Assembly: GCA_002269645.1 (NCBI GenBank)
Contig: NIVC01003185.1
Coordinates: 1,271 to 65,270 of the forward strand
Source of the DNA: Macrostomum lignano
Taxonomy: Eukaryota
Reading direction: 5' to 3'
Length of the DNA: 64,000 nucleotides
Under the pieces are notes generated by a model that was given only the letters and a program-made list of their open reading frames with translations, was not told where the DNA came from and searched no databases. Below, in pieces: positions 10,072 to 52,432 of the stretch. Each line of letters opens with the position of its first letter. The first letter of the stretch is position 1. The position numbers were made by a program, and so were the translations under genes.

Positions 10072-17353
<7,282 letters not shown>

Positions 17354-18516: not shown

Positions 18517-21500
18517 ATGCGCTTAAAGCATTTAAAGACAATTCACCAACCAGCAGAAGGATCTGCTAGAATAGCTTGTTTGGCTTTCTCGCCCAACGGC
18601 AAAAAGTTGGCCATCTGTACCAGCGAGCGGGTCGTCCAACTCTACGATGATAGCGGCGAACGGAAGGACAAATTTGCCACTAAGCCCAGCGACTCCAAGT
18701 ACAGCAAGAACAGCTATCACGTGACCGCGATCGCATTCGGCCCGGACTCGGCTAAGCTGGCCGTAGCCCAGACCGACAACATTATCTACGTGTACAAGAT
18801 TGGCGAAAACTGGGGCGACAAGAAAGTTATCTGCAACAAATTTCCGCAGCAGTCGGCTGTCACAGCCATGATCTGGCCCCCGGAGCAGCAGATTATCTTT
18901 GGCTTAGCCGAGGGTAAAGTCCGGCTGGCGAACACGCGGAACAACAAGTCCAGCACGCTCTACAGCAGCGAATCTCTGGTGGTGAGCCTGGCGTCCAATC
19001 TCTCCGGCAAGGGTTTCGTCTCTGGACATGCTGACGGTCAGATTGTGCGCTACTTTTTCGAAGACGAAGGCACCGGGGAGACGTCCGGTAAGCTTTGCGT
19101 CCATCCGAGCGCGCCCTACGCCCTGTGCTGGGCCGGCGCCACAGTGGTAGCGGCCGGCTCCGACAAGCGAATCTACGCCTACACGCGCGAAGGTCGGCCT
19201 TTGCAGCAGTTCGACTATTCTCGCGACGACAACGAGAAAGAATTCACAGTGGCCTGCTGCAGTCCCAGCGGTCAGACGGTGGTTGTTGGCTCATTCAATC
19301 GGATTCGACTGCTAAACTGGAGCCCGAGCAAAGGCACCTGGGAGGAGGGTGCAGCTACCGAGATCGATAATCTGTACACGGTTACGGCCCTAGCTTGGCG
19401 CCGCGATGGATCTCGAATCGCCAGCGGCAGTCTCTGCGGCGCGGTTGATGTGTTTGACTGTTCGACAAGGCGCGCCGTGTACAAGGACAAGTTCGACGTG
19501 AAATACGTTGGACCAAGTCAGGTGCTGGTGACGGAGATGAAAACTGGTAGAAAAATTGTCATCAAAAGTCACTACGGCTGCGAGGTCAACGATTTAAAAG
19601 TGAGTTCAGTGATTTGTGTAAATGATAAATGAATCCCCAGAAGTCCTACTCTAGTATTGGCCCACCAGCTGCTTACTTGTGCACTGCTGTGATTTTTACA
19701 CTGATAGATAGACGTATAGATAGATGCAGCAGAAGGTTCTCAAACTTAATTTTTCCCAACAGCTATAAATTAAACTTAACATAACAATCAATTCTTCAAA
19801 TAAAGGTGATGGGAAATGACAAGTACCTTATCGCGTACACTACGGAGACACTAATCATCGCCGACATAAAAAACGAACGCGTTAGCGAAGTTCCATGGAC
19901 AGGAGTCGGCAACGAGAAGTTTTTATTCGACTACGAAAACGTGTGCGTCATCTTTCACGACAGCACTCTGTCAATGATCGAGTACGGCCAGCATCAGGTT
20001 CTGGGCTCGGTACGCACCGAGAACTTCAATCCGCATCTGATCAGCGTAAGAATCAACGAACGAAAACAGCTGAACGTGAGCTCAAATCGGAAGCTGGCCT
20101 ACCTGATGGACCTCAAGACTGTTTGCATCTTTGACCTAGATCGGCAATGCACCATCGGCCAGGTGGATCACGATGTGAAAGTTCATTGGCTGGAGTTGAA
20201 TGAAACCAGCCGGAAGCTGCTGTTCAGAGACAAGAAACTGCGCCTGTTCCTCTACGATGTTGATTCAAGCGAGCGGATCGCCCTACTCAACTATTGCTCC
20301 TACGTGCAGTGGGTACCAGGTAGCGACGTGGTGGTCGCCCAGAGCCGGGACACCCTGTGCATCTGGTACAATGTGGACTCACCAGATCGTATCACCAGCC
20401 TGCCATTAAAAGGTGACATCATCGGTGTGGAGCGCCTGGACGGCAAGACCAACGTGATCGTGCGCGATGGCGCCGCCTCGGTGAATTACATGCTGGACGA
20501 GGACCTGATCGAGTTCGGCACTTCAATGGACGACGGCGATTTTGGCAGGGCTGCGGCTTTCCTGGAATCGCAGGAGCAATCGCCGGAGGTTGAGACAATG
20601 TGGAAGACGCTGGCAGACGCGGCATTGCGTGCTGGCTCCGTGACAGTCGCTGAAAGGTCCTACGCGGCGCTTGGCGATGTTTGCAAAGCCCGCTACCTGC
20701 GACAGGTAAGCTGTGTAGTTGCTAAAAAACAAAAATTATGTTTCTATTGCGATGAAATTAGGTTTCCAGTGCTTGCTACACAACAAAAACAGGTGGACGA
20801 GCTGGTGCAACGGCTGGCAGCGGAGGGCGAGCCGGACCCGCTGCTGCACTACCAAGTGCAGGCAAAACTGGCCCTGCTGGACAGAGACTTCAAACGGGCC
20901 GAGCAGATTTATCTGGAACAGAACGCAGTTGACGAGGCTATCGAGATGTACAAGTCTATGCAACGCTGGGAGCTGGCTCTTGAGGTGGCAATGGTGAAAA
21001 ATCATCCCGAGTTGGAGCAGCTCAAGAAAGGCTACTTGGATTGGCTGAGCCGGACCAATCAGGAAGAGAAGGTAAGAAGGTAGAATGCACAGATGTCTGA
21101 TGTACTGCAGCTAAATAAATTTCAGTCTCTGCCAAGCCTTGAGACTTTATTGGAAATATGTTCCGCATCACACTACTGTAGGTAGTTTAAGTCAAGTAAA
21201 ATGGCAAAAGGACTAACGCCTCCAAAATCTGAATCACGCCGATAATACGCACAAAAGGAATTCCAGTTCAGTTTAGGAAGCATAATATGCCTTTCTTACA
21301 ACTAAAACCCGAACGCAGGTCGGCGAGATGAAAGAGCGCGAAGGCGATTACCAAGGCGCCATCTCTTTCTACCTGAAATCCGGTCTGCCCGGCCGGGCCG
21401 CCCAGCTGGCTTTGAGTCGCGACGAGCTGCGCTCGAACAACGACCTGATGAGCCGCATCGCGACCGCTTTAGAACGGGCCGAACTGTTTGAAAAAGCTGG

Positions 21501-24500
21501 CGAACTATTCGAACGCATCGGCAACAATACTGAGGCTATGAAGTGCTACAGGCGCGCTAAGGCGTTTCTTCGAGCCGTGGACTTGGCGCGGCACGCCTAC
21601 CCTTCTGAGGTGGTCCGCCTGGAGGAGGAATGGGGCAACTACCTGGCCATGCAGAAACAGATGGACGCAGCTGTACAGCACTTTATCGAGGCCGGAGTTT
21701 ACACCAAAGCTGTGGACGCTGCTATTGGATCGCGACAGTGGCTCAAGGTATTTAGTATAGGTCGACTTGAGAAGCCTAGTTAAAATGCTCTGGAAATACC
21801 AAATGGCCTGAGAACAACCGCTATCTATGAAACGCATTGAGAAAATGAAATAGAGGGGCTTGTAGCCTTGGTGGTCAGAGCGTCGGACTCACGACTTGAA
21901 GGTCGGGGATTCGATTCCTGATTCCACTGGGACACTTTGTATCCTTTGTGCAAGACACTTAACTCTGCATTGCTTCAGTTCACCGAGCTGTAAAATGGGT
22001 GCCAGAATTAGCTGGGGTAATTGAGGCTGTGTGTGACGACCCCTCCCCCCCAGTCCTTGGACTGAACAGCCGTACGCAGCCTTCAGATGCGCCGCGCAAT
22101 AGCTGCGGCTGAGCTGTCCGGTTGCCGCATTAATACAGATGTAATCAATTATTGTTATTATTACGATTATCATCGTAATTATTTTAGAGATATTCAATTT
22201 TAAGTTTACTCTCTTTCCGGCTTATTGCGAGCGAATCACGGCCGAATTTCGCGATTAGACGTCAAATTTAACCTGGGAATCACTTTTTGTAAATAGGAAA
22301 TTCGTTAGAAAAAAAACTAAAAATTACGCCTACGATCGTAAATGACTTCATAACTAGTTTACCTATAAACTGGCCCATTTAGTGTTAAGTACAGCTGCAC
22401 GATAAGAAGTAAGATTCAAGGTCACGTCAGGATTGTACATGCTGATAAGCGGCGTCTCTGAGAATGCATTACTCCACTTCAACACTTCGCAGGCGGTAGA
22501 GATTCTGCGCAACATGGGCGACGCGCCAAATTTGAAGCCCTACTACGAAAAGTTGGCCATCCATTTTGCTTCCACAATGGAGCTTGACATCGCCGAGCAG
22601 ATGTACGTTCAAGCTGGCAATGTGAAGCAGGCAATCGCCATGTACACGGACGCTGGCAGGCTGGAGGATGCGCACCGGCTGGCGAACAGCCACATGGACC
22701 GGCACGAGTTCAGCCAGATGTACACTAAACAGGCTGACGAGGCCGAAGCAGCCGGCAGGTACAAGGAGGCCGAGAAACTTTTCCTCACTATTGGCCAGGT
22801 AGATCGAGCCATCCGGATGTACAGAAATGCTCGAATGCACCATGACACGATGCGTCTAGTGCGACAGCACGATCCTGCTAATCTGGCGCAAACTCAGGTA
22901 AAGTAACGACCCTATATGAGACTGTCATCTGTTTTTCCTTCTTTTTCGATTTCTCCCTTCTCTCTTTTTCCATGGTGTCGCGGTAGGACTTCCTTCCGTA
23001 CTAACCGTTTAGATCGCCTTTCAAGTTTACAAGACCATATAAGACGAAAGAGACAACTGTTTGAATCTGACAATTTTCTTGGTACTCGTAACTCTATCAA
23101 AAATATTTTGATAATAACTTTTTAGGCGGCCGTAGCAGCCCAGCTGGCCGAAGAGGGCAACCACAGGCAGGCGGAGCAGTTCTTCTTGGAAGCCGGCGAT
23201 TGGAAGGCCGCTGTGAAGATGTACCGCCAGCTGGACATGTGGGAGGACGCCTACAGGGTGGCTAAGAATCACGGCGAGGGACCGGCGGCCAAGCAGGTGG
23301 CCTATTACTGGGCCAGGCACCTGGGCGGAGAGTCGGCAGTTAAACTGCTTACTAGGTATGGTGGATGCCGAGTCTGTCTGTTTGTATTTCTTATCGTCCT
23401 TACTAGGGGAACGCAGCCCAGTAGTCTAGCGCGCCGCTCTGATGTGCCAGAGCGGTCCCAGGCTCGATTCCAAGTGCAGTCACATTAATTTTGGGCTAAA
23501 TTGGAATCTCGGCTTGGCTCTGCTCGTGCAATTAACGGCCTTGAGGCCCAAACCCCAAGACTCAGTGAAGTGTCCATGCCTAGCAATAAATAAGTTAGAG
23601 CCGCTTTACACTCCTGTGCGAGTGTGTGCCTGCTCAGGGGAGTCGGCGGAATGGGCAGTAATGCCTCTCGCCGGTTGTGTGACAATGTCGCTTAAAGTGT
23701 GCCAGGGTGCACAGGCCTCTATTAATAAGAAATCGTGACTGTTTGCAGATTTTTTGTCTGCATTTGTGCCTTGCATTTAAGTGCCCTTAATGTTTCAAGT
23801 TTTAAATAAGGTCCTCCTCTAGAAGCCTTGTTGCATAAAACCATCCTTCAGATTCGGCCTGTTGGAATCAGCCATCGACACCGCCATCGAGAACTCGGCG
23901 TTCGACTTTGCTTTCGAACTATCAAAGAATCTCATGCAGCATAAGACGCCCGAGATACACTTAAAGTACGCCATGTTTTTGGAAGACGAAGGCAAATTTG
24001 CCGAGGCTGAGGAGCACTTCATCAAGGCTAACAAGCCCAAGGAGGCTGTGCTCATGCACGTGCACGCTCGTAACTGGGACGCGGCAAGACGCGTAGCGGA
24101 GAAACACGACAAGGGCTCGATCCCTGACATCCTGGCCGGTCAGGCTCGTCTAGCATTCGAAGAGAAGGAGTTCCAGAAGGCCGAGGCGCTGCTGCTACGG
24201 GCAGAACGACCAGAATTGGCCGTGAAATTCTACAAAGAGGCCGGCATGAAGACGGACGCGTTGCGAGTGTGCAAAGAGTACCTGCCGCATAAACTGGCCC
24301 AGCTCTCTGTGAGTTGCCTCCACAGCTGTGTCTCTGCCTGTATGTCCTATTGTCTTTGGCTGTGTCAGTGTCTGTCAATCCCTACCAAGCTGTGTCAGTG
24401 TCTATCTATTCTTACCAAGCTGTATCAGTGTCTATCAATCCCTACCAAGCTGTATCAGTGTCTGTCACTTCCTACCAAGCTGTGTCAGTGTCTGTCAATC

Positions 24501-27500
24501 CCTACCAAGCTGTGTCAGTGTCTGTCAATCCCTACCAAGCTGTGTCAGTGTCTGTCAATCCCTACCAAGCTGTGTCAGTGTCTGTCACTTCCTACCAAGC
24601 TGTGTCAGTGTCTGTCAATCCCTACCAAGCTGTGTCAGTGTCTGTCAATTCCTACCAAGCTGTGTCAGTGTCTGTCAATCCCTACCAAGCTGTGTCAGTG
24701 TCTGTCAATTCCTACCAAGCTGTGTCAGTGTCTGTCAATCCCTACCAAGCTGTGTCAGTGTCTAAATTCCTAGAGTTGTCAGTTTCTTGCATTTTTGTCT
24801 GACAATACGTTTAATCCTTTTTATCGACTGTCGCCGCATGCACCACAGGAGGAGCTCGAGTACGAGGCCACCGCCCAGAAAGCGGACGGCATTCAGAATC
24901 TGATCAGAGAGGCCAAACAATACGAGGCCTCTGGTAACCACCTGAAAGCGGTGGAGATGTACCTGAAGCTCACAACCGACGTCACGAACGACGAGTCGAT
25001 GTTGGCAGGCGCCTGGCGCAAAGCCGCCGACCTCGCCGTGAAATTCCTTAGCGCCGACAAGCACGAAAAAGTGGTAGACATTGTTGCCAACCGGCTGAAA
25101 TCGATCGGGCGTCACGCGGACGCAGCCGAGGTCTACCTGCGCGTAGAGATGGTCCAAGAGTGCGTGGACGCCTACATCAGCGCCGAGGATTGGTCTAACG
25201 CGCGACGGGTTGCTAAGCAACTGGAGCCAAGACTAAACAGCTACATTGAGACAAAGTACAAGGAAAGCCTAACCTCGGCTGGCAACGCTCAGGTGAGAGA
25301 GATTCCGATTGAACCCCTAGGCCCAGGGTTCGATTCCTCTATGCGTGCCTGTGCAGCAATCCGTGTGCTTGGCTTTTGAAATGTTTTAAGCTTAACGTCT
25401 GGTGGTTTTGAATGGTCGTAAAACTCACGATCCTTGAACGATGGTTGGTTGGTTGTACTGCAGTGACAAACGCAGAATTTTTAATTGGAGGGGGATGCAA
25501 CTCTAATGGAGGGGCTGGCAGCAGCAGCCTGAAGGGTCAGCTCAAGCGCCTGCAAGTCAGCAATGAGGCAGTCCGTTAGAGTGGCAGTGCGGGCCTGGCC
25601 GCGGCGCCATTGCTCGGTTGACCGGTGCAGCATGGCCAGGGGCAGGATGGACGGGCGCACCGTAGCCCAGGGTCCGTAGGCAGTGGCCCAGCAGCATCTG
25701 ACGGCGCCGGCGCAGGGTAGTGGAGCGATGGCGGAGTTCCAGCGTGGGCCATCAGAGCGTTGGTCGGCAGGCGCTCCGGGTAGTGCACGCCCAGCGCGTA
25801 GTGAAGCAGCGGTCGGTAGAGCGCGTCCAGGGCTCGCTCTCGCGTCTCGGTCAGCGGCACAGCCTCAATATGCCGTACAGGAGGATCGGCACCAAGTCTA
25901 GTGGATCGGCATACTTAGACCGCAGGCTGACACGAGCGATTGTTGGCTATAGAGGCTAAAGAGTTGAGCAAGACGCTTCAGCACTCAATACAGAACTATT
26001 GAATGCCTCAATGACTGCAAGTTGGTGTCCTTAAAATTCATAAACTAGCTAAATTTCATTAGTGAGTACATGCCTGACTATCAGGAAATCAGGGCCGCTG
26101 TAAACCCTGTGTGAGCGTGTTTATGAGTGCGCTTGCATGTGCTCAGGAGTGCCAGGGTGCCCAAACTTTGTTTTTAACGATAACGCCAACAACACTTCAC
26201 ACGAACCCAGGAGCTGGCAGCCACAGGCGACGTTGGATCCGCTGTTGACATGCTCGCCGCCAAAGGCCAATGGGAAAAGTGCCTCGCCATGGCCGAGAAG
26301 CAGGACTACAAGCTGCTGCACAAATATGTGGCCATGTACGCTACCAATCTCATCAAGGAGGGCAATACGGAGGCGGCATTGACGCTCTACGTGAAACACG
26401 GCGCCCCGGCGTTCCAGCAGAACTACAACATCTACCGCAAGATATTTAAGGACGTCATCAGCATGCGGGACATGTGCAAGCCTGGTGCCTATCCGATCTG
26501 GGCCGACCTGCGCGACTTCCTGCTCAATTTGGTGCACAATTTGGAGAAGTCCTCGGACAGGGGCTCGCAGGATCACGAACTGTTTGACCAGCTGCTAACT
26601 ATTGGGCACTACTGTGCCATTCGGTTAGTACTTGCCGACTGGCTTCTCAGACTCCAGGAGCCAGGGCCAGACCCCTTTACCCAAGAGGGCTAAGACAGAC
26701 AGCTCACTCTTTAATTACTTTTTCACTCACTCATAATAGCCACCTCACACCGAAATTAAGCTATGAACCCAGCTAAACACATCGCACGAATAACTAGATG
26801 AAAATTAAAATTGCTACTATCGAGTTTAAACCCCGAATCGTCATCACAGGTCAGCGATGCTGTCGGACGACTCTTTAAAGCCGCAAGCGACCAAAGTGGC
26901 CATCAGTCTGCTGCGATACACGGAGTACATGCCGGCCGACAAGGCCTTCTACGAGGCTGGTATAATGTGCAAATCCATCGGCTGGGATAACATGGCATTC
27001 GTGTTCCTCAATCACTATTTGGATCTAATCGAAGCGATCGAGGATCAGGACGATTCGTCCTTAAATCATTCGGATTTCGAGGGCACGGACATACCAGCCG
27101 AAGTGCCTCTGCCAGCCTCGCCCCACACTAACAGTACAGAGTACGAAGAGGTGAGTACTCGCCGAGTATGCATGGGCGTTTTAGAATACCTAGATAGATT
27201 AAATGATTAATAGTTTAGGCTTTTTAAGGGGTGTAGATTGGATTCAAAGGGTGCAGTTTGGATTCAAGGGGTGCAGTTTGGATTCAAGGGGTGTAGTTTG
27301 GATTCAAGAGATGTAGCCTGGATTCAAGGGGTGTAGTTTGGTTTCAAGGGGTGTGGTTTGGATTGAAGGGGTGTGGCTTGGATTCAAGAGATGCAGTTTG
27401 GATTCAAGAGATGTAGCTTGGATTCAATGGGTGTAGCTTGGATTCAAGGGGTGTAGCCTGGATTCAAGAGATGTAGCTTGGATTCAAGAGATTTGGTTTG

Positions 27501-27897
27501 GATTCAAGGGAGTAGCCTGGATTCAATGATGTAGCACCAATGATTAGCATAATGCTTTAACAAGATCCACCCTTAACCGCAGGTGAAAGCCTGGATCCTG
27601 GAAGTATCAATGAACCAACGCATGGAACAGACGCTGCCGAAAGACAATCGAGGCATATTCGAGGCCTCACTAATTGGCGGCCAGATGAGCCCCTATCCGC
27701 CATGCGTGATCACCGGTTACCCGGTGCTAGAGACTGGCGTGCAGTTTAAACGGACGGACAAGACGGCTAACAAAGACGATTATAACAAGATGCTGACGGC
27801 CACTAAGATGAGCCACTCTGTGGACTGCCAGGATGTGCTGAAATTCATCACGAACTGGTGCGGCAATCTGCCAATGCCGACTTACTCGTTCAAGTGA
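18517..27897 (+). CDS. IFT172: Intraflagellar transport protein 172, complete (1751 aa); exons 18517-19599, 19806-20705, 20793-21071, 21319-21747, 22493-22897, 23126-23355, 23852-24308, 24849-25292, 26211-26623, 26850-27150, 27583-27897
   Basis: Eleven exons splice in frame (5256 nt). N-terminus MRLKHLKT..., WD40 propellers, TPR-like solenoid and C-terminal PCVITGYPV...[11 protein letters not shown] all match IFT172/OSM-1 architecture and length. Confidence 0.95.
21855..22170 (+). mobile_element. CORE-domain-like SINE (family 2) in IFT172 intron 4; duplicate copy at 32055-32370
   Basis: tRNA-like head (TAGCCTTGGTGG; GATTCGATTCC), a CORE-like GCAAGACACTTAAC...CTTCAGTT...CTGTAAAATGGG segment and an (ATT)n tail. 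Homologues at 43039-43308 and 52131-52392. Confidence 0.8.
23406..23732 (+). mobile_element. SINE family 1 copy in IFT172 intron 6; duplicate copy at 33606-33932
   Basis: Colinear with 13928-14288, for example GGCTCGATTCCAAGT and GCTCAGGGGAGTCGGCGGAATGGGCAGTAATGCCTCTCGCCGGTTGTGTG. Confidence 0.9.
24358..24763. repeat. Minisatellite, 30-bp unit TGTGTCAGTGTCTGTCAATCCCTACCAAGC (IFT172 intron 7); duplicate at 34558-34963
   Basis: About 13.5 copies seen directly. Confidence 0.95.
25500..25960 (-). mobile_element. 3' fragment of an RTE-like non-LTR retrotransposon ORF in IFT172 intron 8; duplicate at 35700-36160
   Basis: Frameshifted pieces [52 protein letters not shown] and [21 protein letters not shown] resemble the post-RT region of RTE-type ORF2. 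Confidence 0.7.
27226..27533. repeat. Minisatellite, 20-bp unit GATTCAAGGGGTGTAGTTTG (IFT172 intron 10); duplicate at 37426-37733
   Basis: About 15 copies seen directly. Confidence 0.95.
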
Positions 27898-28479
27898 TTT
27901 GGAACGAAAATACAGGATTGCTGAACATATATACTACTAATAGCGACTCGGACTTTGAGCCTAATTAACGCCTACTTTTCTCGTTTAATAATTACTGTTC
28001 TGTTTTCTACAACCAAGACAAAATAAAGAGAGATTATAAATACGAAAGTCGATATTGCACCTGAACGTTTTCAATAGCCTTTGAGCAATATACAGAAATA
28101 AAAAATAATATTGTACGGAAGTAGAATAAATGTACTTCCTTTAATAAATTTCTGCTTGTTTATACTTTGCACCATTTAAAAACTAAAAAGAACACACCGA
28201 CAAGAAGTCTTTGGTTAATACTTGATACTGACGTAAAAAGAACATATAGGGAAGAGCGATGAAAAAAGATAGCCAAAACTGCATCAAAGAGCAGAGTTAC
28301 TGCTGAGCCATTCCGCTGACTCTTGAGCATACATGAGCACATGAGCTAGTCTAGGATACGTACTTCTGACACACCATCAATAAAAACTGGCACAATGGCC
28401 CGATGACAAAAAAAACAGAATCACAAAAACTGACGCGAGTCTGTGTCATAATCAACTGACGCTATTGGGTGAAAAACTG

Positions 28480-30194
28480 TCAAAGACCCGCTCGCCCAAT
28501 ACTGATAGCTTTGCACAACCATTTCGGCGACACGAGCGACACCAGGAAGCTGGGAATGCTGATGCCCGCGAGCGCTAATGAGAGCAGCAGACAGCCAATT
28601 AGACAGACGAGCGAAGTCAGGGTTGGTGCCAGGGACATAACAGGATTTGAAGGACTGTTGAGTAGAGTCTGCGGTGTAGTAGAGGGTAGCAAATTGCTAT
28701 TAGTTGGTTCATGAAGCTAAGAATGATAGCACTGACTGAATGTGGACCGTGTCTTTGTGGGGCCTGACTCATCTGACTCAATGTGGACCGTGTCTTTGTG
28801 GGGCCTGACACATCTGACTCAATGTGGACCGTGTCTCTAAGAGGCCTGACTCTTCTGACTCAATTTAGACCGTGTCTTTGTGGGGCCTGACTCATCTGAC
28901 TCAATGTTGATCGTGTCTTTGAGGGGCCTGACACATCTGACTCAATGTTGATCCGTCTTTGAGGGGCCTGACACATCTGACTCAATGTTGATCGTGTCTT
29001 TGAGGGGCCTGACACATCTGACTCAATGTTGATCCGTCTTTGAGGGGCCTGACACATCTGACTCAATGTTGATCCTGTCTTTGTGGGGCCTGACACATCT
29101 GACTCAATGTTGATCGTGTCTTTGAGGGGCCTGACACATCTGACTCAATGTGGACCGTGTCTCTAAGAGGCCTGACACATCTGACTCAATGTTGATCGTG
29201 TCTTTGAGGGGCCTGACACATCTGACTCAATGTTGATCGTGTCTTTGAGGGGCCTGACACATCTGACTCAATGTTGATCGTGTCTTTGAGGGGCCTGACA
29301 CATCTGACTCAATGTTGATCGTGTCTTTGAGGGGCCTGACACATCTGACTCAATGTAGACCGTGTCTCTAAGAGGCCTGACTCTTCTAAGTCAATGTTGA
29401 TCGTGTCTTTGAGGGGCCTGACACATCTGACTCAATGTTGATCCGTCTTTGAGGGGCCTGACACATCTGACTCAATGTTGATCGTGTCTTTGAGGGGCCT
29501 GACACATCTGACTCAATGTTGATCCGTCTTTGAGGGGCCTGACACATCTGACTCAATGTTGATCCTGTCTTTGTGGGGCCTGACACATCTGACTCAATGT
29601 TGATCGTGTCTTTGAGGGGCCTGACACATCTGACTCAATGTGGACCGTGTCTCTAAGAGGCCTGACACATCTGACTCAATGTTGATCGTGTCTTTGAGGG
29701 GCCTGACACATCTGACTCAATGTTGATCGTGTCTTTGAGGGGCCTGACACATCTGACTCAATGTTGATCGTGTCTTTGAGGGGCCTGACACATCTGACTC
29801 AATGTTGATCGTGTCTTTGAGGGGCCTGACACATCTGACTCAATGTAGACCGTGTCTCTAAGAGGCCTGACTCTTCTAAGTCAATGTTGATCGTGTCTTT
29901 GAGGGGCCTGACACATCTGACTCAATGTTGATCGTGTCTTTGAGGGGCCTGACACATCTGACTCAATGTTGATCGTGTCTTTGAGGGGCCTGACACATCT
30001 GACTCAATGTAGACCGTGTCTCTAAGAGGCCTGACTCTTCTGACTCAATGTTGATCGTGTCTTTGAGAGTCCTGACTCATCTGACTACAAATATAGACTG
30101 GGATTTAGCAAAGCCGGATAAAACTCTTAAGAAGACCCACCAGCAGCGAGCAGAGCAGGTGACTTGACCACACAGCTGCGAGCAGGTGCAGTTT
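28480..30194 (-). pseudogene. APH1: Orphan APH-1 3' fragment (last 54 nt of exon 4, intron 4, exon 5 at 28480-28668) created by the duplication
   Basis: Identical to 38680-40394. It has no start codon or upstream exons and abuts IFT172 exon 2 sequence at the junction. Confidence 0.9.
28732..30088. repeat. Minisatellite, 41-bp unit GACACATCTGACTCAATGTTGATCGTGTCTTTGAGGGGCCT (APH-1 intron 4, duplicated copy)
   Basis: Period 41 measured (29171 and 29212), about 33 copies. Confidence 0.95.
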
Positions 30195-33100
30195 CAGGTT
30201 CTGGGCTCGGTACGCACCGAGAACTTCAATCCGCATCTGATCAGCGTAAGAATCAACGAACGAAAACAGCTGAACGTGAGCTCAAATCGGAAGCTGGCCT
30301 ACCTGATGGACCTCAAGACTGTTTGCATCTTTGACCTAGATCGGCAATGCACCATCGGCCAGGTGGATCACGATGTGAAAGTTCATTGGCTGGAGTTGAA
30401 TGAAACCAGCCGGAAGCTGCTGTTCAGAGACAAGAAACTGCGCCTGTTCCTCTACGATGTTGATTCAAGCGAGCGGATCGCCCTACTCAACTATTGCTCC
30501 TACGTGCAGTGGGTACCAGGTAGCGACGTGGTGGTCGCCCAGAGCCGGGACACCCTGTGCATCTGGTACAATGTGGACTCACCAGATCGTATCACCAGCC
30601 TGCCATTAAAAGGTGACATCATCGGTGTGGAGCGCCTGGACGGCAAGACCAACGTGATCGTGCGCGATGGCGCCGCCTCGGTGAATTACATGCTGGACGA
30701 GGACCTGATCGAGTTCGGCACTTCAATGGACGACGGCGATTTTGGCAGGGCTGCGGCTTTCCTGGAATCGCAGGAGCAATCGCCGGAGGTTGAGACAATG
30801 TGGAAGACGCTGGCAGACGCGGCATTGCGTGCTGGCTCCGTGACAGTCGCTGAAAGGTCCTACGCGGCGCTTGGCGATGTTTGCAAAGCCCGCTACCTGC
30901 GACAGGTAAGCTGTGTAGTTGCTAAAAAACAAAAATTATGTTTCTATTGCGATGAAATTAGGTTTCCAGTGCTTGCTACACAACAAAAACAGGTGGACGA
31001 GCTGGTGCAACGGCTGGCAGCGGAGGGCGAGCCGGACCCGCTGCTGCACTACCAAGTGCAGGCAAAACTGGCCCTGCTGGACAGAGACTTCAAACGGGCC
31101 GAGCAGATTTATCTGGAACAGAACGCAGTTGACGAGGCTATCGAGATGTACAAGTCTATGCAACGCTGGGAGCTGGCTCTTGAGGTGGCAATGGTGAAAA
31201 ATCATCCCGAGTTGGAGCAGCTCAAGAAAGGCTACTTGGATTGGCTGAGCCGGACCAATCAGGAAGAGAAGGTAAGAAGGTAGAATGCACAGATGTCTGA
31301 TGTACTGCAGCTAAATAAATTTCAGTCTCTGCCAAGCCTTGAGACTTTATTGGAAATATGTTCCGCATCACACTACTGTAGGTAGTTTAAGTCAAGTAAA
31401 ATGGCAAAAGGACTAACGCCTCCAAAATCTGAATCACGCCGATAATACGCACAAAAGGAATTCCAGTTCAGTTTAGGAAGCATAATATGCCTTTCTTACA
31501 ACTAAAACCCGAACGCAGGTCGGCGAGATGAAAGAGCGCGAAGGCGATTACCAAGGCGCCATCTCTTTCTACCTGAAATCCGGTCTGCCCGGCCGGGCCG
31601 CCCAGCTGGCTTTGAGTCGCGACGAGCTGCGCTCGAACAACGACCTGATGAGCCGCATCGCGACCGCTTTAGAACGGGCCGAACTGTTTGAAAAAGCTGG
31701 CGAACTATTCGAACGCATCGGCAACAATACTGAGGCTATGAAGTGCTACAGGCGCGCTAAGGCGTTTCTTCGAGCCGTGGACTTGGCGCGGCACGCCTAC
31801 CCTTCTGAGGTGGTCCGCCTGGAGGAGGAATGGGGCAACTACCTGGCCATGCAGAAACAGATGGACGCAGCTGTACAGCACTTTATCGAGGCCGGAGTTT
31901 ACACCAAAGCTGTGGACGCTGCTATTGGATCGCGACAGTGGCTCAAGGTATTTAGTATAGGTCGACTTGAGAAGCCTAGTTAAAATGCTCTGGAAATACC
32001 AAATGGCCTGAGAACAACCGCTATCTATGAAACGCATTGAGAAAATGAAATAGAGGGGCTTGTAGCCTTGGTGGTCAGAGCGTCGGACTCACGACTTGAA
32101 GGTCGGGGATTCGATTCCTGATTCCACTGGGACACTTTGTATCCTTTGTGCAAGACACTTAACTCTGCATTGCTTCAGTTCACCGAGCTGTAAAATGGGT
32201 GCCAGAATTAGCTGGGGTAATTGAGGCTGTGTGTGACGACCCCTCCCCCCCAGTCCTTGGACTGAACAGCCGTACGCAGCCTTCAGATGCGCCGCGCAAT
32301 AGCTGCGGCTGAGCTGTCCGGTTGCCGCATTAATACAGATGTAATCAATTATTGTTATTATTACGATTATCATCGTAATTATTTTAGAGATATTCAATTT
32401 TAAGTTTACTCTCTTTCCGGCTTATTGCGAGCGAATCACGGCCGAATTTCGCGATTAGACGTCAAATTTAACCTGGGAATCACTTTTTGTAAATAGGAAA
32501 TTCGTTAGAAAAAAAACTAAAAATTACGCCTACGATCGTAAATGACTTCATAACTAGTTTACCTATAAACTGGCCCATTTAGTGTTAAGTACAGCTGCAC
32601 GATAAGAAGTAAGATTCAAGGTCACGTCAGGATTGTACATGCTGATAAGCGGCGTCTCTGAGAATGCATTACTCCACTTCAACACTTCGCAGGCGGTAGA
32701 GATTCTGCGCAACATGGGCGACGCGCCAAATTTGAAGCCCTACTACGAAAAGTTGGCCATCCATTTTGCTTCCACAATGGAGCTTGACATCGCCGAGCAG
32801 ATGTACGTTCAAGCTGGCAATGTGAAGCAGGCAATCGCCATGTACACGGACGCTGGCAGGCTGGAGGATGCGCACCGGCTGGCGAACAGCCACATGGACC
32901 GGCACGAGTTCAGCCAGATGTACACTAAACAGGCTGACGAGGCCGAAGCAGCCGGCAGGTACAAGGAGGCCGAGAAACTTTTCCTCACTATTGGCCAGGT
33001 AGATCGAGCCATCCGGATGTACAGAAATGCTCGAATGCACCATGACACGATGCGTCTAGTGCGACAGCACGATCCTGCTAATCTGGCGCAAACTCAGGTA

Positions 33101-36100
33101 AAGTAACGACCCTATATGAGACTGTCATCTGTTTTTCCTTCTTTTTCGATTTCTCCCTTCTCTCTTTTTCCATGGTGTCGCGGTAGGACTTCCTTCCGTA
33201 CTAACCGTTTAGATCGCCTTTCAAGTTTACAAGACCATATAAGACGAAAGAGACAACTGTTTGAATCTGACAATTTTCTTGGTACTCGTAACTCTATCAA
33301 AAATATTTTGATAATAACTTTTTAGGCGGCCGTAGCAGCCCAGCTGGCCGAAGAGGGCAACCACAGGCAGGCGGAGCAGTTCTTCTTGGAAGCCGGCGAT
33401 TGGAAGGCCGCTGTGAAGATGTACCGCCAGCTGGACATGTGGGAGGACGCCTACAGGGTGGCTAAGAATCACGGCGAGGGACCGGCGGCCAAGCAGGTGG
33501 CCTATTACTGGGCCAGGCACCTGGGCGGAGAGTCGGCAGTTAAACTGCTTACTAGGTATGGTGGATGCCGAGTCTGTCTGTTTGTATTTCTTATCGTCCT
33601 TACTAGGGGAACGCAGCCCAGTAGTCTAGCGCGCCGCTCTGATGTGCCAGAGCGGTCCCAGGCTCGATTCCAAGTGCAGTCACATTAATTTTGGGCTAAA
33701 TTGGAATCTCGGCTTGGCTCTGCTCGTGCAATTAACGGCCTTGAGGCCCAAACCCCAAGACTCAGTGAAGTGTCCATGCCTAGCAATAAATAAGTTAGAG
33801 CCGCTTTACACTCCTGTGCGAGTGTGTGCCTGCTCAGGGGAGTCGGCGGAATGGGCAGTAATGCCTCTCGCCGGTTGTGTGACAATGTCGCTTAAAGTGT
33901 GCCAGGGTGCACAGGCCTCTATTAATAAGAAATCGTGACTGTTTGCAGATTTTTTGTCTGCATTTGTGCCTTGCATTTAAGTGCCCTTAATGTTTCAAGT
34001 TTTAAATAAGGTCCTCCTCTAGAAGCCTTGTTGCATAAAACCATCCTTCAGATTCGGCCTGTTGGAATCAGCCATCGACACCGCCATCGAGAACTCGGCG
34101 TTCGACTTTGCTTTCGAACTATCAAAGAATCTCATGCAGCATAAGACGCCCGAGATACACTTAAAGTACGCCATGTTTTTGGAAGACGAAGGCAAATTTG
34201 CCGAGGCTGAGGAGCACTTCATCAAGGCTAACAAGCCCAAGGAGGCTGTGCTCATGCACGTGCACGCTCGTAACTGGGACGCGGCAAGACGCGTAGCGGA
34301 GAAACACGACAAGGGCTCGATCCCTGACATCCTGGCCGGTCAGGCTCGTCTAGCATTCGAAGAGAAGGAGTTCCAGAAGGCCGAGGCGCTGCTGCTACGG
34401 GCAGAACGACCAGAATTGGCCGTGAAATTCTACAAAGAGGCCGGCATGAAGACGGACGCGTTGCGAGTGTGCAAAGAGTACCTGCCGCATAAACTGGCCC
34501 AGCTCTCTGTGAGTTGCCTCCACAGCTGTGTCTCTGCCTGTATGTCCTATTGTCTTTGGCTGTGTCAGTGTCTGTCAATCCCTACCAAGCTGTGTCAGTG
34601 TCTATCTATTCTTACCAAGCTGTATCAGTGTCTATCAATCCCTACCAAGCTGTATCAGTGTCTGTCACTTCCTACCAAGCTGTGTCAGTGTCTGTCAATC
34701 CCTACCAAGCTGTGTCAGTGTCTGTCAATCCCTACCAAGCTGTGTCAGTGTCTGTCAATCCCTACCAAGCTGTGTCAGTGTCTGTCACTTCCTACCAAGC
34801 TGTGTCAGTGTCTGTCAATCCCTACCAAGCTGTGTCAGTGTCTGTCAATTCCTACCAAGCTGTGTCAGTGTCTGTCAATCCCTACCAAGCTGTGTCAGTG
34901 TCTGTCAATTCCTACCAAGCTGTGTCAGTGTCTGTCAATCCCTACCAAGCTGTGTCAGTGTCTAAATTCCTAGAGTTGTCAGTTTCTTGCATTTTTGTCT
35001 GACAATACGTTTAATCCTTTTTATCGACTGTCGCCGCATGCACCACAGGAGGAGCTCGAGTACGAGGCCACCGCCCAGAAAGCGGACGGCATTCAGAATC
35101 TGATCAGAGAGGCCAAACAATACGAGGCCTCTGGTAACCACCTGAAAGCGGTGGAGATGTACCTGAAGCTCACAACCGACGTCACGAACGACGAGTCGAT
35201 GTTGGCAGGCGCCTGGCGCAAAGCCGCCGACCTCGCCGTGAAATTCCTTAGCGCCGACAAGCACGAAAAAGTGGTAGACATTGTTGCCAACCGGCTGAAA
35301 TCGATCGGGCGTCACGCGGACGCAGCCGAGGTCTACCTGCGCGTAGAGATGGTCCAAGAGTGCGTGGACGCCTACATCAGCGCCGAGGATTGGTCTAACG
35401 CGCGACGGGTTGCTAAGCAACTGGAGCCAAGACTAAACAGCTACATTGAGACAAAGTACAAGGAAAGCCTAACCTCGGCTGGCAACGCTCAGGTGAGAGA
35501 GATTCCGATTGAACCCCTAGGCCCAGGGTTCGATTCCTCTATGCGTGCCTGTGCAGCAATCCGTGTGCTTGGCTTTTGAAATGTTTTAAGCTTAACGTCT
35601 GGTGGTTTTGAATGGTCGTAAAACTCACGATCCTTGAACGATGGTTGGTTGGTTGTACTGCAGTGACAAACGCAGAATTTTTAATTGGAGGGGGATGCAA
35701 CTCTAATGGAGGGGCTGGCAGCAGCAGCCTGAAGGGTCAGCTCAAGCGCCTGCAAGTCAGCAATGAGGCAGTCCGTTAGAGTGGCAGTGCGGGCCTGGCC
35801 GCGGCGCCATTGCTCGGTTGACCGGTGCAGCATGGCCAGGGGCAGGATGGACGGGCGCACCGTAGCCCAGGGTCCGTAGGCAGTGGCCCAGCAGCATCTG
35901 ACGGCGCCGGCGCAGGGTAGTGGAGCGATGGCGGAGTTCCAGCGTGGGCCATCAGAGCGTTGGTCGGCAGGCGCTCCGGGTAGTGCACGCCCAGCGCGTA
36001 GTGAAGCAGCGGTCGGTAGAGCGCGTCCAGGGCTCGCTCTCGCGTCTCGGTCAGCGGCACAGCCTCAATATGCCGTACAGGAGGATCGGCACCAAGTCTA

Positions 36101-38097
36101 GTGGATCGGCATACTTAGACCGCAGGCTGACACGAGCGATTGTTGGCTATAGAGGCTAAAGAGTTGAGCAAGACGCTTCAGCACTCAATACAGAACTATT
36201 GAATGCCTCAATGACTGCAAGTTGGTGTCCTTAAAATTCATAAACTAGCTAAATTTCATTAGTGAGTACATGCCTGACTATCAGGAAATCAGGGCCGCTG
36301 TAAACCCTGTGTGAGCGTGTTTATGAGTGCGCTTGCATGTGCTCAGGAGTGCCAGGGTGCCCAAACTTTGTTTTTAACGATAACGCCAACAACACTTCAC
36401 ACGAACCCAGGAGCTGGCAGCCACAGGCGACGTTGGATCCGCTGTTGACATGCTCGCCGCCAAAGGCCAATGGGAAAAGTGCCTCGCCATGGCCGAGAAG
36501 CAGGACTACAAGCTGCTGCACAAATATGTGGCCATGTACGCTACCAATCTCATCAAGGAGGGCAATACGGAGGCGGCATTGACGCTCTACGTGAAACACG
36601 GCGCCCCGGCGTTCCAGCAGAACTACAACATCTACCGCAAGATATTTAAGGACGTCATCAGCATGCGGGACATGTGCAAGCCTGGTGCCTATCCGATCTG
36701 GGCCGACCTGCGCGACTTCCTGCTCAATTTGGTGCACAATTTGGAGAAGTCCTCGGACAGGGGCTCGCAGGATCACGAACTGTTTGACCAGCTGCTAACT
36801 ATTGGGCACTACTGTGCCATTCGGTTAGTACTTGCCGACTGGCTTCTCAGACTCCAGGAGCCAGGGCCAGACCCCTTTACCCAAGAGGGCTAAGACAGAC
36901 AGCTCACTCTTTAATTACTTTTTCACTCACTCATAATAGCCACCTCACACCGAAATTAAGCTATGAACCCAGCTAAACACATCGCACGAATAACTAGATG
37001 AAAATTAAAATTGCTACTATCGAGTTTAAACCCCGAATCGTCATCACAGGTCAGCGATGCTGTCGGACGACTCTTTAAAGCCGCAAGCGACCAAAGTGGC
37101 CATCAGTCTGCTGCGATACACGGAGTACATGCCGGCCGACAAGGCCTTCTACGAGGCTGGTATAATGTGCAAATCCATCGGCTGGGATAACATGGCATTC
37201 GTGTTCCTCAATCACTATTTGGATCTAATCGAAGCGATCGAGGATCAGGACGATTCGTCCTTAAATCATTCGGATTTCGAGGGCACGGACATACCAGCCG
37301 AAGTGCCTCTGCCAGCCTCGCCCCACACTAACAGTACAGAGTACGAAGAGGTGAGTACTCGCCGAGTATGCATGGGCGTTTTAGAATACCTAGATAGATT
37401 AAATGATTAATAGTTTAGGCTTTTTAAGGGGTGTAGATTGGATTCAAAGGGTGCAGTTTGGATTCAAGGGGTGCAGTTTGGATTCAAGGGGTGTAGTTTG
37501 GATTCAAGAGATGTAGCCTGGATTCAAGGGGTGTAGTTTGGTTTCAAGGGGTGTGGTTTGGATTGAAGGGGTGTGGCTTGGATTCAAGAGATGCAGTTTG
37601 GATTCAAGAGATGTAGCTTGGATTCAATGGGTGTAGCTTGGATTCAAGGGGTGTAGCCTGGATTCAAGAGATGTAGCTTGGATTCAAGAGATTTGGTTTG
37701 GATTCAAGGGAGTAGCCTGGATTCAATGATGTAGCACCAATGATTAGCATAATGCTTTAACAAGATCCACCCTTAACCGCAGGTGAAAGCCTGGATCCTG
37801 GAAGTATCAATGAACCAACGCATGGAACAGACGCTGCCGAAAGACAATCGAGGCATATTCGAGGCCTCACTAATTGGCGGCCAGATGAGCCCCTATCCGC
37901 CATGCGTGATCACCGGTTACCCGGTGCTAGAGACTGGCGTGCAGTTTAAACGGACGGACAAGACGGCTAACAAAGACGATTATAACAAGATGCTGACGGC
38001 CACTAAGATGAGCCACTCTGTGGACTGCCAGGATGTGCTGAAATTCATCACGAACTGGTGCGGCAATCTGCCAATGCCGACTTACTCGTTCAAGTGA
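30195..38097 (+). pseudogene. IFT172: 5'-truncated IFT172 copy (from within exon 2 through exon 11 and the stop), lacking about the first 424 codons
   Basis: Identical to 19995-27897. It lacks exon 1 and the promoter, but the remaining exons are intact. Confidence 0.9.
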
Positions 38098-38679
38098 TTT
38101 GGAACGAAAATACAGGATTGCTGAACATATATACTACTAATAGCGACTCGGACTTTGAGCCTAATTAACGCCTACTTTTCTCGTTTAATAATTACTGTTC
38201 TGTTTTCTACAACCAAGACAAAATAAAGAGAGATTATAAATACGAAAGTCGATATTGCACCTGAACGTTTTCAATAGCCTTTGAGCAATATACAGAAATA
38301 AAAAATAATATTGTACGGAAGTAGAATAAATGTACTTCCTTTAATAAATTTCTGCTTGTTTATACTTTGCACCATTTAAAAACTAAAAAGAACACACCGA
38401 CAAGAAGTCTTTGGTTAATACTTGATACTGACGTAAAAAGAACATATAGGGAAGAGCGATGAAAAAAGATAGCCAAAACTGCATCAAAGAGCAGAGTTAC
38501 TGCTGAGCCATTCCGCTGACTCTTGAGCATACATGAGCACATGAGCTAGTCTAGGATACGTACTTCTGACACACCATCAATAAAAACTGGCACAATGGCC
38601 CGATGACAAAAAAAACAGAATCACAAAAACTGACGCGAGTCTGTGTCATAATCAACTGACGCTATTGGGTGAAAAACTG

Positions 38680-41600
38680 TCAAAGACCCGCTCGCCCAAT
38701 ACTGATAGCTTTGCACAACCATTTCGGCGACACGAGCGACACCAGGAAGCTGGGAATGCTGATGCCCGCGAGCGCTAATGAGAGCAGCAGACAGCCAATT
38801 AGACAGACGAGCGAAGTCAGGGTTGGTGCCAGGGACATAACAGGATTTGAAGGACTGTTGAGTAGAGTCTGCGGTGTAGTAGAGGGTAGCAAATTGCTAT
38901 TAGTTGGTTCATGAAGCTAAGAATGATAGCACTGACTGAATGTGGACCGTGTCTTTGTGGGGCCTGACTCATCTGACTCAATGTGGACCGTGTCTTTGTG
39001 GGGCCTGACACATCTGACTCAATGTGGACCGTGTCTCTAAGAGGCCTGACTCTTCTGACTCAATTTAGACCGTGTCTTTGTGGGGCCTGACTCATCTGAC
39101 TCAATGTTGATCGTGTCTTTGAGGGGCCTGACACATCTGACTCAATGTTGATCCGTCTTTGAGGGGCCTGACACATCTGACTCAATGTTGATCGTGTCTT
39201 TGAGGGGCCTGACACATCTGACTCAATGTTGATCCGTCTTTGAGGGGCCTGACACATCTGACTCAATGTTGATCCTGTCTTTGTGGGGCCTGACACATCT
39301 GACTCAATGTTGATCGTGTCTTTGAGGGGCCTGACACATCTGACTCAATGTGGACCGTGTCTCTAAGAGGCCTGACACATCTGACTCAATGTTGATCGTG
39401 TCTTTGAGGGGCCTGACACATCTGACTCAATGTTGATCGTGTCTTTGAGGGGCCTGACACATCTGACTCAATGTTGATCGTGTCTTTGAGGGGCCTGACA
39501 CATCTGACTCAATGTTGATCGTGTCTTTGAGGGGCCTGACACATCTGACTCAATGTAGACCGTGTCTCTAAGAGGCCTGACTCTTCTAAGTCAATGTTGA
39601 TCGTGTCTTTGAGGGGCCTGACACATCTGACTCAATGTTGATCCGTCTTTGAGGGGCCTGACACATCTGACTCAATGTTGATCGTGTCTTTGAGGGGCCT
39701 GACACATCTGACTCAATGTTGATCCGTCTTTGAGGGGCCTGACACATCTGACTCAATGTTGATCCTGTCTTTGTGGGGCCTGACACATCTGACTCAATGT
39801 TGATCGTGTCTTTGAGGGGCCTGACACATCTGACTCAATGTGGACCGTGTCTCTAAGAGGCCTGACACATCTGACTCAATGTTGATCGTGTCTTTGAGGG
39901 GCCTGACACATCTGACTCAATGTTGATCGTGTCTTTGAGGGGCCTGACACATCTGACTCAATGTTGATCGTGTCTTTGAGGGGCCTGACACATCTGACTC
40001 AATGTTGATCGTGTCTTTGAGGGGCCTGACACATCTGACTCAATGTAGACCGTGTCTCTAAGAGGCCTGACTCTTCTAAGTCAATGTTGATCGTGTCTTT
40101 GAGGGGCCTGACACATCTGACTCAATGTTGATCGTGTCTTTGAGGGGCCTGACACATCTGACTCAATGTTGATCGTGTCTTTGAGGGGCCTGACACATCT
40201 GACTCAATGTAGACCGTGTCTCTAAGAGGCCTGACTCTTCTGACTCAATGTTGATCGTGTCTTTGAGAGTCCTGACTCATCTGACTACAAATATAGACTG
40301 GGATTTAGCAAAGCCGGATAAAACTCTTAAGAAGACCCACCAGCAGCGAGCAGAGCAGGTGACTTGACCACACAGCTGCGAGCAGGTGCAGTTTACGGCT
40401 CTCCAGACAGGCGAACGTCACCACAGTCCAGCAGATGTTCAGACAGGAGAACAGCAGGGCCAGACAGGCGGACACCAGCAGGAAAGCTTCGTGCTCACCG
40501 GCCAAACCGACGGAGCCGGGGCCGGACACGTCAGCCAGCAGGTTCACCATGGCGAATGCCCCGGACATGAAGCCGAAGCCGAGGCCGCACACTGCCGGAG
40601 GGAGTGACAATGGCGATTAATGAGAGTGACAATGTCGATGCATGAGAGTGACGATGGCGACGGATGAGAGTGACAATGGCGATGGATGAGAGTGACAATG
40701 TGGATGGATGAGAGTGACAATGGCGACGGATGAGAGTGACAATGGCGATAGATGAGAGTAATAATGTTGATGAATGAGTGACAATAGCGATGGATGAGAG
40801 TGACGATGGCGATGGATGAGAGTGACAATGTCGAAGGATGAGAGTGACAATGGCGATGGATGGGAGTGACAATGACGATGGATAATAGTGACAATTGCGA
40901 TGGATGAGAGTGACAATGGCGATAGATGAGAGTGACAATGTCGAAGGATGAGAGTGACAATGGCGACGGATGAGAGTGACAATGGCGATGGATGAAAGTG
41001 ACAATGGCGACGGATGAGAGCGACAATGGCGATAGATGAGAGTGACAATGGCGATAGATGAGAGTGACAATGGCGATGGATGAAAGTGACAATGCAACGG
41101 ATGAGAGTGACAATGGCGATAGATGAAAGTGAAAATGTCGATGGATGAGTGACAATGTCGATGGATGAGAGTGACAATGGCGATGGATGAGAGTGACAAT
41201 GTCGATGAATGAGAGTGACAATGGAGATGGATGAAAGTGAAAATGTCGATGGATGAGAGTGACAATTGCGATGGATGAGAGTGACAATGGCGATGGATGA
41301 GTGACATTGTCGATGGATGAGAGTGACAATTGCGATGGATGAAAGTGACAATGTCGATGGATGAGAGTGACATCGATGAATGGGAGTGACAATGGCGATG
41401 GATAAGAGTGACAATATTGATGGATGAGAGTGACAATAGCGATGGATGAGAGTGACAATGGCGATAAATGAGAGTGACAATGGCGATAAATGAGAGGGAA
41501 AAAGGCGATGGATAATAGTGACAATGGTAAGAGTGAGTGTCATCGGGATAGGTGAAGTAGATAACAGTACGCTCATAACTAAAGAGTGACAACAACAGAT

Positions 41601-42863: not shown

Positions 42864-43038
42864 GCCGGCACTTTCTAGGCGGCTTGTCACGTTTGAACAA
42901 GCAGAAATATTAGCGAGATTTATTTATTGGATTGTTTTATATAGCTAAGGACACTACTTGTATGAGTCTGAATAGAATGTTGCTGTTTAAATTTGCCGCA
43001 ATCAAGCAAAATATCCTCGATATAGATATTTGTAGCTT

Positions 43039-49121: not shown

Positions 49122-49169
49122 GCTGAGCAGTGACTCTGTGGTAGATTGAAGGTGTCAATTTTGCAAGAC

Positions 49170-52392: not shown

Positions 52393-52432
52393 TATTTGTT
52401 ATTCTAAAGCATGATCACCAATAAAAATTCAA

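Follow-up and report, generated by a model that had tools for sequence, protein, structure and literature searches.

An exact 10.2-kb tandem repeat spanning parts of IFT172 and APH-1 in the Macrostomum lignano assembly

Young tandem copy-number variants (CNVs) formed by NHEJ or FoSTeS/MMBIR consist of head-to-tail copies with a single novel junction and zero to a few nucleotides of microhomology; they have no flanking repeats, their breakpoints disregard gene boundaries, and partial gene copies lie in the middle. A second class of near-identical neighbors arises during assembly: homotype false duplications (Rhie et al. 2021, PMC8081667; Ko et al. 2022, PMC9516828) are of long-read scale, show no haplotype differences, can create partial gene models, and are found at contig boundaries or with gaps and read errors. 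A third precedent comes from M. lignano itself, whose assembly Mlig_3_7 was built from PacBio CLR reads with Canu, followed by Pilon and SSPACE (PMC5730564). The genome comprises three subgenomes (L1, L2 and S) with a published divergence of 1.4-2.4%, and the assembly is known to misrepresent paralogues: blocks present in four copies, defined by between-scaffold homologies, account for 11.9% by length versus 1.7% by read coverage, most of them have 3-fold read coverage, and chimeric scaffolds hold 36% of the length (PMC10733133). The line DV1 is highly inbred (PMC10733133).

Here we describe a 10,200-nt tandem repeat in Mlig_3_7 that shares features with each of these systems. It has all the features of young tandem CNVs listed above, but differs from typical cases in being known from the assembly alone, in combining 1 nt of microhomology with imperfect similarity, and in its absolute identity, which extends even to minisatellites. 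The lack of haplotype differences and the partial gene model created, and probably the size, are those of homotype false duplications, whereas the M. lignano unit lies inside a gapless contig and is free of errors. Like the over-represented blocks of the same assembly, the unit occurs four times in a mostly three-fold genome; unlike them, its extra copy sits in tandem on one contig and is 100% identical.

Structure of the repeat and its junction

The window (the whole 64,000-nt stretch analyzed) is the end of GenBank record NIVC01003185.1 (65,270 nt), with an offset of 1,270. Copy 1 occupies window positions 19995-30194 (record NIVC01003185.1:21265-31464) and copy 2 occupies 30195-40394 (record 31465-41664), with the same letters in GenBank. 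A full position-by-position comparison, which a first-pass annotation of this DNA had proposed, found 0 mismatches in 10,200 positions and bears out its description of two adjacent exact copies; an exact repeat of 10.2 kb cannot arise by chance. Each unit runs from the middle of IFT172 exon 2 to the IFT172 stop codon, across the 3′-3′ intergenic spacer, and into the 3′ part of APH-1. Copy 2 retains all introns and the intergenic spacer, and is thus not the intronless, poly(A)-bearing product of a retro-duplication. Rfam and tRNA scans of the duplicated interval gave no match, and when the window and two paralogous loci were searched for further long exact repeats, nothing emerged beyond higher-order structure inside minisatellites.

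The sole novel junction (30185-30204, break between 30194 and 30195) reads GGTGCAGTTT / CAGGTTCTGG, where the slash marks the break, and has 1-nt microhomology and no filler (...GCAGGTGCAGTTT / CAGGTTCTGGGC... in its surrounding text; TGACCACACAGCTGCGAGCAGGTGCAGTTT / CAGGTTCTGGGCTCGGTACGCACCGAGAAC in its wider 31-mer context). Here the antisense half of APH-1 exon 4 runs into what is left of IFT172 exon 2. The exact match runs on for 1 nt leftward (T at 19994 and 30194) and 0 nt rightward, so the unit is equally writable as 19994-30193 and 30194-40393; the boundary comparison thereby agrees with the junction letters and single-T microhomology first proposed. By contrast with this junction, the outer boundaries (19994/19995 and 40394/40395) are native, continuous exon in colinear homologue alignments. 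Adjacent direct copies, one novel junction and native outer edges are the topology of a tandem segmental duplication, and since the 64-kb window contains 0 N, the junction lies inside a contig and not at a scaffold join.

Three minisatellite arrays lie inside the unit (30-nt x13.5, 20-nt x15 and 41-nt x33; 2,061 nt in total), and all are doubled exactly. The 41-nt array (28732-30086, with its exact repeat at 38932-40286) fills part of the last APH-1 intron and ends 108 nt from the right-hand breakpoint. Arrays in the window show ~2-3% divergence even where the unique sequence of the copies compared differs by just ~0.2%, a contrast that weighs against a real duplication. The left breakpoint region (19979-20002) bears an imperfect similarity to the right one, with 10/16 nt matching left of the break and 5/8 right of it, a likeness above chance (score 6, empirical p 0.007-0.011, ~0.01) by a statistic picked after viewing the data. 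NAHR would call for direct repeats of tens to thousands of nucleotides at both breakpoints; 1 nt of exact homology and these imperfect matches are what the locus offers.

Genes cut by the repeat

The intact IFT172 gene (18517-27897, + strand) comprises exon 1 (18517-~19602), exon 2 (~19800-21074), the TPR exons that follow, and a stop codon at 27895-27897. Its predicted protein of ~1,754 aa is made up of ~427 codons before the breakpoint and the 1,327 aa of an annotated fragment, and its C-terminus matches PDB 9h2d (E 3e-72). Homologues of IFT172 are colinear through 19995 in copy 1, and their alignment begins exactly at 30195 in copy 2. That second, 5′-truncated IFT172 (30195-38097, + strand) has no promoter and no exon 1, and is also missing the first ~65 codons of exon 2. 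In GenBank it is a gene at 14794-22696 (-) of locus L001, with a partial 1,327-aa CDS beginning exactly at the junction.

APH-1 lies on the opposite strand. The intact gene (PAA52774.1, BOX15_Mlig026367g1; 38680-42890, - strand) is a GenBank model that matches Pfam Aph-1 (E 1e-25) and has five coding exons (42890-42753, 42683-42537, 41910-41635, 40592-40341 and 38868-38683) plus a stop codon. When this model is mapped to the window, the right breakpoint falls in the fourth coding exon (40592 to 40341), and a match to PDB APH-1B (E 1e-15) runs ungapped over 40394/40395. The last exon gave no match with an approximate human APH1A query, and the exon structure is taken from the GenBank model. An orphan APH-1 3′ tail occupies 28480-30194 (- strand; copy-2 coordinates minus 10,200) and consists of the last 18 codons of exon 4 (30194 to 30141), the last intron with its 41-nt array, the last exon (28668 to 28483) and the stop codon (28482-28480).

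The homologue alignments and the APH-1 model therefore place the breakpoints in IFT172 exon 2 and APH-1 exon 4, as the first-pass annotation had done, and its picture of one intact copy of each gene with a truncated IFT172 and an orphan APH-1 tail between them holds. Each gene is complete once, so the dosage of IFT172 and APH-1 does not change. The extra pieces are two 3′ fragments, back to back at the junction and pointing apart; because they diverge and have neither promoters nor 5′ exons, no fusion gene can form.

Young duplication or assembly product

Taken alone, the sequence fits both a very young real duplication and an over-expansion error, between which raw reads would discriminate. 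We put the chance that this is a real, very young head-to-tail 10.2-kb tandem duplication, carried by one subgenome copy out of three in the M. lignano DV1 DNA that was sequenced, at a shade better than even. Such a duplication may have originated through a template switch during replication or through non-homologous joining. Having just traversed the last APH-1 intron with its 1.35-kb 41-nt minisatellite, a nascent strand would disengage at 30194, re-prime 10.2 kb back at the weakly similar IFT172 exon 2 site through its terminal T and the 10/16 imperfect matches, and copy the interval a second time.

The other copies of the locus were found on NIVC01000093.1 and NIVC01000212.1, which are ~99% identical mutually and 93-98% identical to the window in the duplicated interval. 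IFT172 is without annotation on both, and the 10-kb paralogous flanks that we fetched reach as far as the equivalents of window positions 21265 and 23628, and not to the left breakpoint. From ~43.8 kb on, the window all but duplicates NIVC01000212.1, with 99.3-100% identity once variable arrays are set aside; over 6 kb at ~99.7% likeness the two differ by substitutions and minisatellite variants, with 0 single-base homopolymer indels among the listed differences. NIVC01003185.1 itself is a short contig (65 kb) with a mosaic relation to other scaffolds, and a retrotransposon open reading frame with Macrostomum affinity was seen in protein searches. The three-subgenome constitution and the misrepresentation of paralogues in Mlig_3_7 (PMC10733133) would be the grounds for reading the second copy as a retained haplotype or subgenome variant (L1, L2 or S) misplaced in tandem, that is, a heterotype false duplication. 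We regard this as scarcely credible, as a place has already been found for each of the three subgenome copies and the published divergence predicts more than 100 differences per 10.2 kb. The observed 0 differences, against 1-7% between paralogous copies, refute a heterotype false duplication.

Over-expansion during assembly, a homotype false duplication in which Canu and Pilon laid out the 10.2 kb of one subgenome copy twice and polishing with multi-mapping reads equalized the copies, is a serious contender to which we assign somewhat less than an even chance. A point in its favor, and against a real duplication, is the perfect identity over 10,200 nt although 2,061 nt are minisatellite. The host contig is short and, through its near-redundancy with NIVC01000212.1, marks a tangled region of the assembly graph. 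A length of 10.2 kb falls within the usual range of PacBio CLR reads. Homotype false duplications in VGP assemblies are of about one read length (PMC8081667), and the unit may be of about that size. Together with the two paralogous scaffolds the unit forms a 4-copy block, a class that in Mlig_3_7 is mostly 3-fold in coverage, in an assembly of widespread chimerism (PMC10733133); this published statistic derives, however, from between-scaffold homologies and may not fit within-contig tandem copies. Known false duplications, moreover, lie at contig boundaries or are gapped, and carry read errors or heterozygous differences (PMC8081667, PMC9516828), whereas here the copies are separated by no gap and by no difference.

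Support for a real duplication comes from the junction, which is clean, gapless, within a contig and also present in the public record. Overlap-layout assemblers can place a junction within a contig only if one or more reads contain it, and it is very improbable that ligation would make a chimera of two points 10 kb apart on the same strand. Joins made by SSPACE leave at least one N, and we know of no Canu, Pilon or SSPACE step by which a direct junction free of gaps could be made unless some read contained it, which counts against over-expansion, as does the homeology at the breakpoints, not expected from a layout error. Identity between the copies can also be accommodated by a real duplication: residual assembly error nearby looks low, so two truly identical copies could emerge identical, and since DV1 is highly inbred, a duplication of recent date would be expected in homozygous, exact form. 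The protein-search matches included no M. lignano entries from Logan read assemblies. The alternatives first offered, a non-homologous duplication of very recent date or an artefact, both stand, with the exception of an artefact of construction.

That exception follows from the record. Planting of the sequence during preparation of the window, which the length of exactly 10,200 nt might suggest, has a negligible probability: record positions 29950-54160 (locus L001), which take in the junction and the whole of copy 2, equal window positions 28680-52890 exactly, and 1,270 plus 64,000 gives 65,270, the full length of the record, which leaves no room for an insertion. Planting is refuted for the stretch that comprises the junction and copy 2, both in the public source record. 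A fixed-length software step was likewise considered for 10,200 (170 x 60, 102 x 100) and rejected; the record boundaries (21265, 31465 and 41665) match no round coordinate, and we know of no such step in Canu, Pilon or SSPACE. The round length is a coincidence with no known mechanistic meaning, and of the two grounds on which the first-pass annotation took an artefact seriously, perfect identity is retained and round length is not. The same junction could also reflect an extrachromosomal circle of 10.2 kb, or an array with three or more copies, that the assembler threaded into a two-copy tandem; excision between both breakpoints would yield an identical junction and an assembly-graph loop identical to that of a tandem duplication. 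Such a circle would, however, have to be abundant enough to rival chromosomal reads, and its low prior makes this class of explanations very unlikely. Slightly less probable again is the specific case of an abundant 10.2-kb extrachromosomal circular DNA, cut out between IFT172 exon 2 and APH-1 exon 4 beside the minisatellite, with no chromosomal duplication.

Consequences for annotation and for M. lignano

Neither of the two outcomes, a duplication of very recent date or an error of assembly, is out of the ordinary, and the value of the repeat is mainly practical. Public annotation lists a 1,327-aa partial IFT172 model that exists solely through the duplication, and we advise caution with this fragment, which, pending confirmation by reads, is best left out of counts of gained genes and which would be a false gain if the repeat is an artefact. 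In that case the locus would represent a gapless, error-free false duplication within a contig, of a kind that filters based on gaps or haplotype k-mers would miss. If real, it would add a further, very young structural variant to a flatworm that is neopolyploid and structurally unstable, and its minisatellite-adjacent breakpoint would be a small data point on how such events begin.

Duplicated unit and its junction

Position-by-position comparison of 19995-30194 with 30195-40394 found no mismatch over the 10,200 nt of each copy, bearing out the first-pass annotation of two exact, adjacent copies. Identity reaches one nucleotide further on the left and none on the right, so that the junction at 30194|30195 (...GGTGCAGTTT|CAGGTTCTGG...) has the 1-nt (T) microhomology previously noted and no filler. 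Because both outer boundaries are native sequence, this is the sole new junction, and the topology is that of an inserted tandem copy. The 64-kb window contains no N bases and no further long exact repeats, save higher-order structure within arrays.

The unit holds seven homopolymer runs of at least 6 nt and three minisatellites copied exactly in copy 2, with units of 30 nt (13.5 repeats, 24359-24763), 20 nt (15 repeats, 27226-27526) and 41 nt (33 repeats, 28732-30086, copied at 38932-40286), which sum to 2,061 nt, or 20% of its length. The 41-nt array shows higher-order structure, with exact 200-mers repeating at a 490-nt offset. The right breakpoint lies 108 nt from this 1.35-kb array, which would be a plausible fork-stalling site.

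Genes cut by the breakpoints

Intact IFT172 (18517-27897, + strand) was delineated by homologue alignments, with homologue residue 1 at 18517, and by a match of its C-terminal domain to the solved mammalian IFT172 C-terminus 9h2d (E = 3e-72). Exon 1 ends at ~19602, exon 2 spans ~19800-21074 and is followed by TPR exons, and the stop codon is at 27895-27897. Position 19995 thus falls inside exon 2, where the left breakpoint had been placed. Alignments are unbroken through 19995 in copy 1 and start exactly at 30195 in copy 2, which carries a 5′-truncated IFT172 (30195-38097, + strand) with a 1,327-residue GenBank product beginning exactly at the junction; the ~427 codons before the breakpoint and these 1,327 residues add up to ~1,754, the normal IFT172 length. 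In a homology search with exon 2, this 1,327-aa fragment annotated on NIVC01003185.1 was absent from the matches (best ~50% identity); the APH-1 protein of the same contig did come up in a search of the same protein index.

The five coding exons of the GenBank APH-1 model, mapped to the window (42890-42753, 42683-42537, 41910-41635, 40592-40341 and 38868-38683, - strand), put the right breakpoint in exon 4, again as first annotated. This intact gene (PAA52774.1, BOX15_Mlig026367g1; 42890 to 38680, - strand) has Pfam Aph-1 matches at E ~1e-25, a query joined from its exons matches PAA52774.1 at 100% identity, and the exon with the GxxxGxxxG motif aligns ungapped to human APH-1B across 40394|40395. 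Exon 4 has its donor, GTGGGT, at 40340 (copy 1: 30140); most of the last intron consists of the 41-nt minisatellite. Exon 3 (41635-41910, - strand) encodes a low-complexity Ser/Ala/Val-rich stretch of ~92 residues, which each of the three M. lignano paralogues retains, altered by a few substitutions and a single small indel; the corresponding loop of human APH-1A is ~20 residues long.

From left to right, the order is intact IFT172, an orphan APH-1 tail comprising the last 80 codons (30194 to 28480, - strand), 5′-truncated IFT172 and intact APH-1, the layout of one intact copy per gene with two fragments between them that had been described. The fragments diverge from the junction without 5′ exons or promoters, and no fusion transcript would be expected from it.

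Paralogous loci and flanking sequence

APH-1 has two further copies in the assembly, on NIVC01000093.1 and NIVC01000212.1. Over the IFT172/APH-1 interval, identity is 98.7-100% between these scaffolds and 93-98% between them and the window, in keeping with the published three-subgenome structure (S, L1 and L2), whose divergences are 1.4-2.4% (PMC10733133). The window and these two loci thus account for all three subgenome copies, and the second tandem copy is the fourth. Were it a retained haplotype or subgenome variant, more than 100 differences would be expected; none is seen, and this reading is excluded with near certainty. Through APH-1 exon 4, both scaffolds keep the colinear order of a single-copy locus, in compared flanks that end before the left breakpoint. 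IFT172 is unannotated on both, though its sequence occurs there.

Leaving aside the most variable arrays, window positions 43800-52890 share 99.3-100% identity with NIVC01000212.1, and left of ~43.8 kb the window is only 93-98% identical to both scaffolds. Judged from this switch, the contig or NIVC01000212.1 is a mosaic of subgenome relationships, through either chimeric assembly or homeologue recombination. The switch lies ~3 kb off the duplication boundary and the two do not coincide.

Minisatellites are very dense over 40602-56689 (units of 22, 10/31, 18, 39, 21/42, 29/55/168, 39/117, 24 and 22 nt), several within an annotated gene for a 513-aa cyclophilin-type (Pro_isomerase) protein (43546-49130, - strand); one frame of the 18-nt array at 44634-45992 is open throughout as a six-residue PSVAGA-type repeat, which may or may not be coding. 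Further features are a tRNA-Thr (anticodon CGT, 52320-52393, - strand; ARAGORN and Rfam, 32.9 bits, gathering score 29) and exons of a DUF2046 (PF09755) gene (56752-57225, - strand, and 52433-52890; Pfam E = 3e-53, GenBank 347-aa product). The left flank carries an apparently intact non-LTR retrotransposon (2735-6474, - strand) with an AP-endonuclease ORF (5320-6474, - strand) and an RT and RNase H ORF (2735-5386, - strand). Its closest named relatives are M. lignano proteins (78-96% identity over partial alignments), some in chimeric gene models, e.g., one named ABC transporter.

Recent duplication or assembly error

Once reverse-complemented, NIVC01003185.1:29950-54160 (GCA_002269645.1) is identical to window 28680-52890. 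The offset of 1,270 plus 64,000 gives the record length of 65,270, so the window takes up the final 64,000 nt of the record, with nothing inserted during its preparation; the units lie at 21265-31464 and 31465-41664 of the record. This match and arithmetic rule out, practically beyond doubt, a duplication planted while the window was prepared. Of the first-pass alternatives, a recent event or an artefact, both therefore stand where assembly error is meant, and a construction artefact falls away.

We lean slightly towards a real, very young duplication over an assembly error. The junction is gapless and inside a contig, and in overlap-layout assembly some read would have to contain such a junction. 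That a ligation chimera joined two points 10 kb from each other on the same strand is very improbable. The ancestral breakpoint regions are alike at 10 of 16 positions left and 5 of 8 right of the break (empirical p 0.007-0.011 against random position pairs in the window, for a statistic picked post hoc), which is at most suggestive of a real duplication. Residual assembly error looks low near the duplication: in a 6-kb stretch of ~99.7% likeness between the window and NIVC01000212.1, the differences on the list comprise substitutions and minisatellite variants and not one single-base homopolymer indel. High inbreeding of the sequenced DV1 line (PMC10733133) and the putative fork-stalling array beside the right breakpoint also count towards a real duplication.

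That the assembly laid out one 10.2-kb stretch twice is a substantial possibility, though short of probable. The copies are absolutely identical even within arrays, whereas the window's arrays differ by ~2-3% between copies ~0.2% apart in unique sequence. The draft assembly, Mlig_3_7, was built from PacBio reads with Canu 1.4, Pilon polishing and SSPACE scaffolding (PMC5730564). Its chimeric scaffolds hold 36% of its length, and its four-copy blocks, 11.9% of length against 1.7% by read coverage, are mostly unmatched by coverage (PMC10733133), although this statistic rests on between-scaffold homologies and may not cover copies in tandem on one contig. NIVC01003185.1 is itself short and, from ~43.8 kb on, nearly redundant with NIVC01000212.1. 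At 10.2 kb the unit falls within the usual range of PacBio CLR reads, and homotype false duplications are reported to be about one read long (PMC8081667). Against an artefact of the usual kinds, the false duplications described so far are found at contig boundaries or with a gap between copies and show errors or heterozygous k-mers (PMC8081667, PMC9516828), features that this gapless, error-free duplication inside a contig lacks. An extrachromosomal circle or multi-copy array behind the junction is hardly to be expected.

Were the duplication real, the lack of any difference over 10,200 nt would bound copy divergence at 2.9e-4 per site (95% upper bound), or ~1e-4 when arrays are weighted by the ~12-fold faster change taken from the 6-kb comparison with NIVC01000212.1. 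Between 46548-50213 and that scaffold, arrays differ by ~0.3-5% and unique sequence by ~0.2%; the arrays have reshuffled unit variants and gained or lost 2-3 nt at a time, which roughly gauges, for this locus, how much faster they change. A real duplication would be younger by a factor of at least 20 than the similarity to NIVC01000212.1 along the right flank, and by a factor above 100 than the L1/L2 split.

The finding is accurate but ordinary: a young non-homologous copy-number variant of a common kind, or a draft-assembly error. The partial IFT172 gene model in GenBank is not to be read as gene gain.
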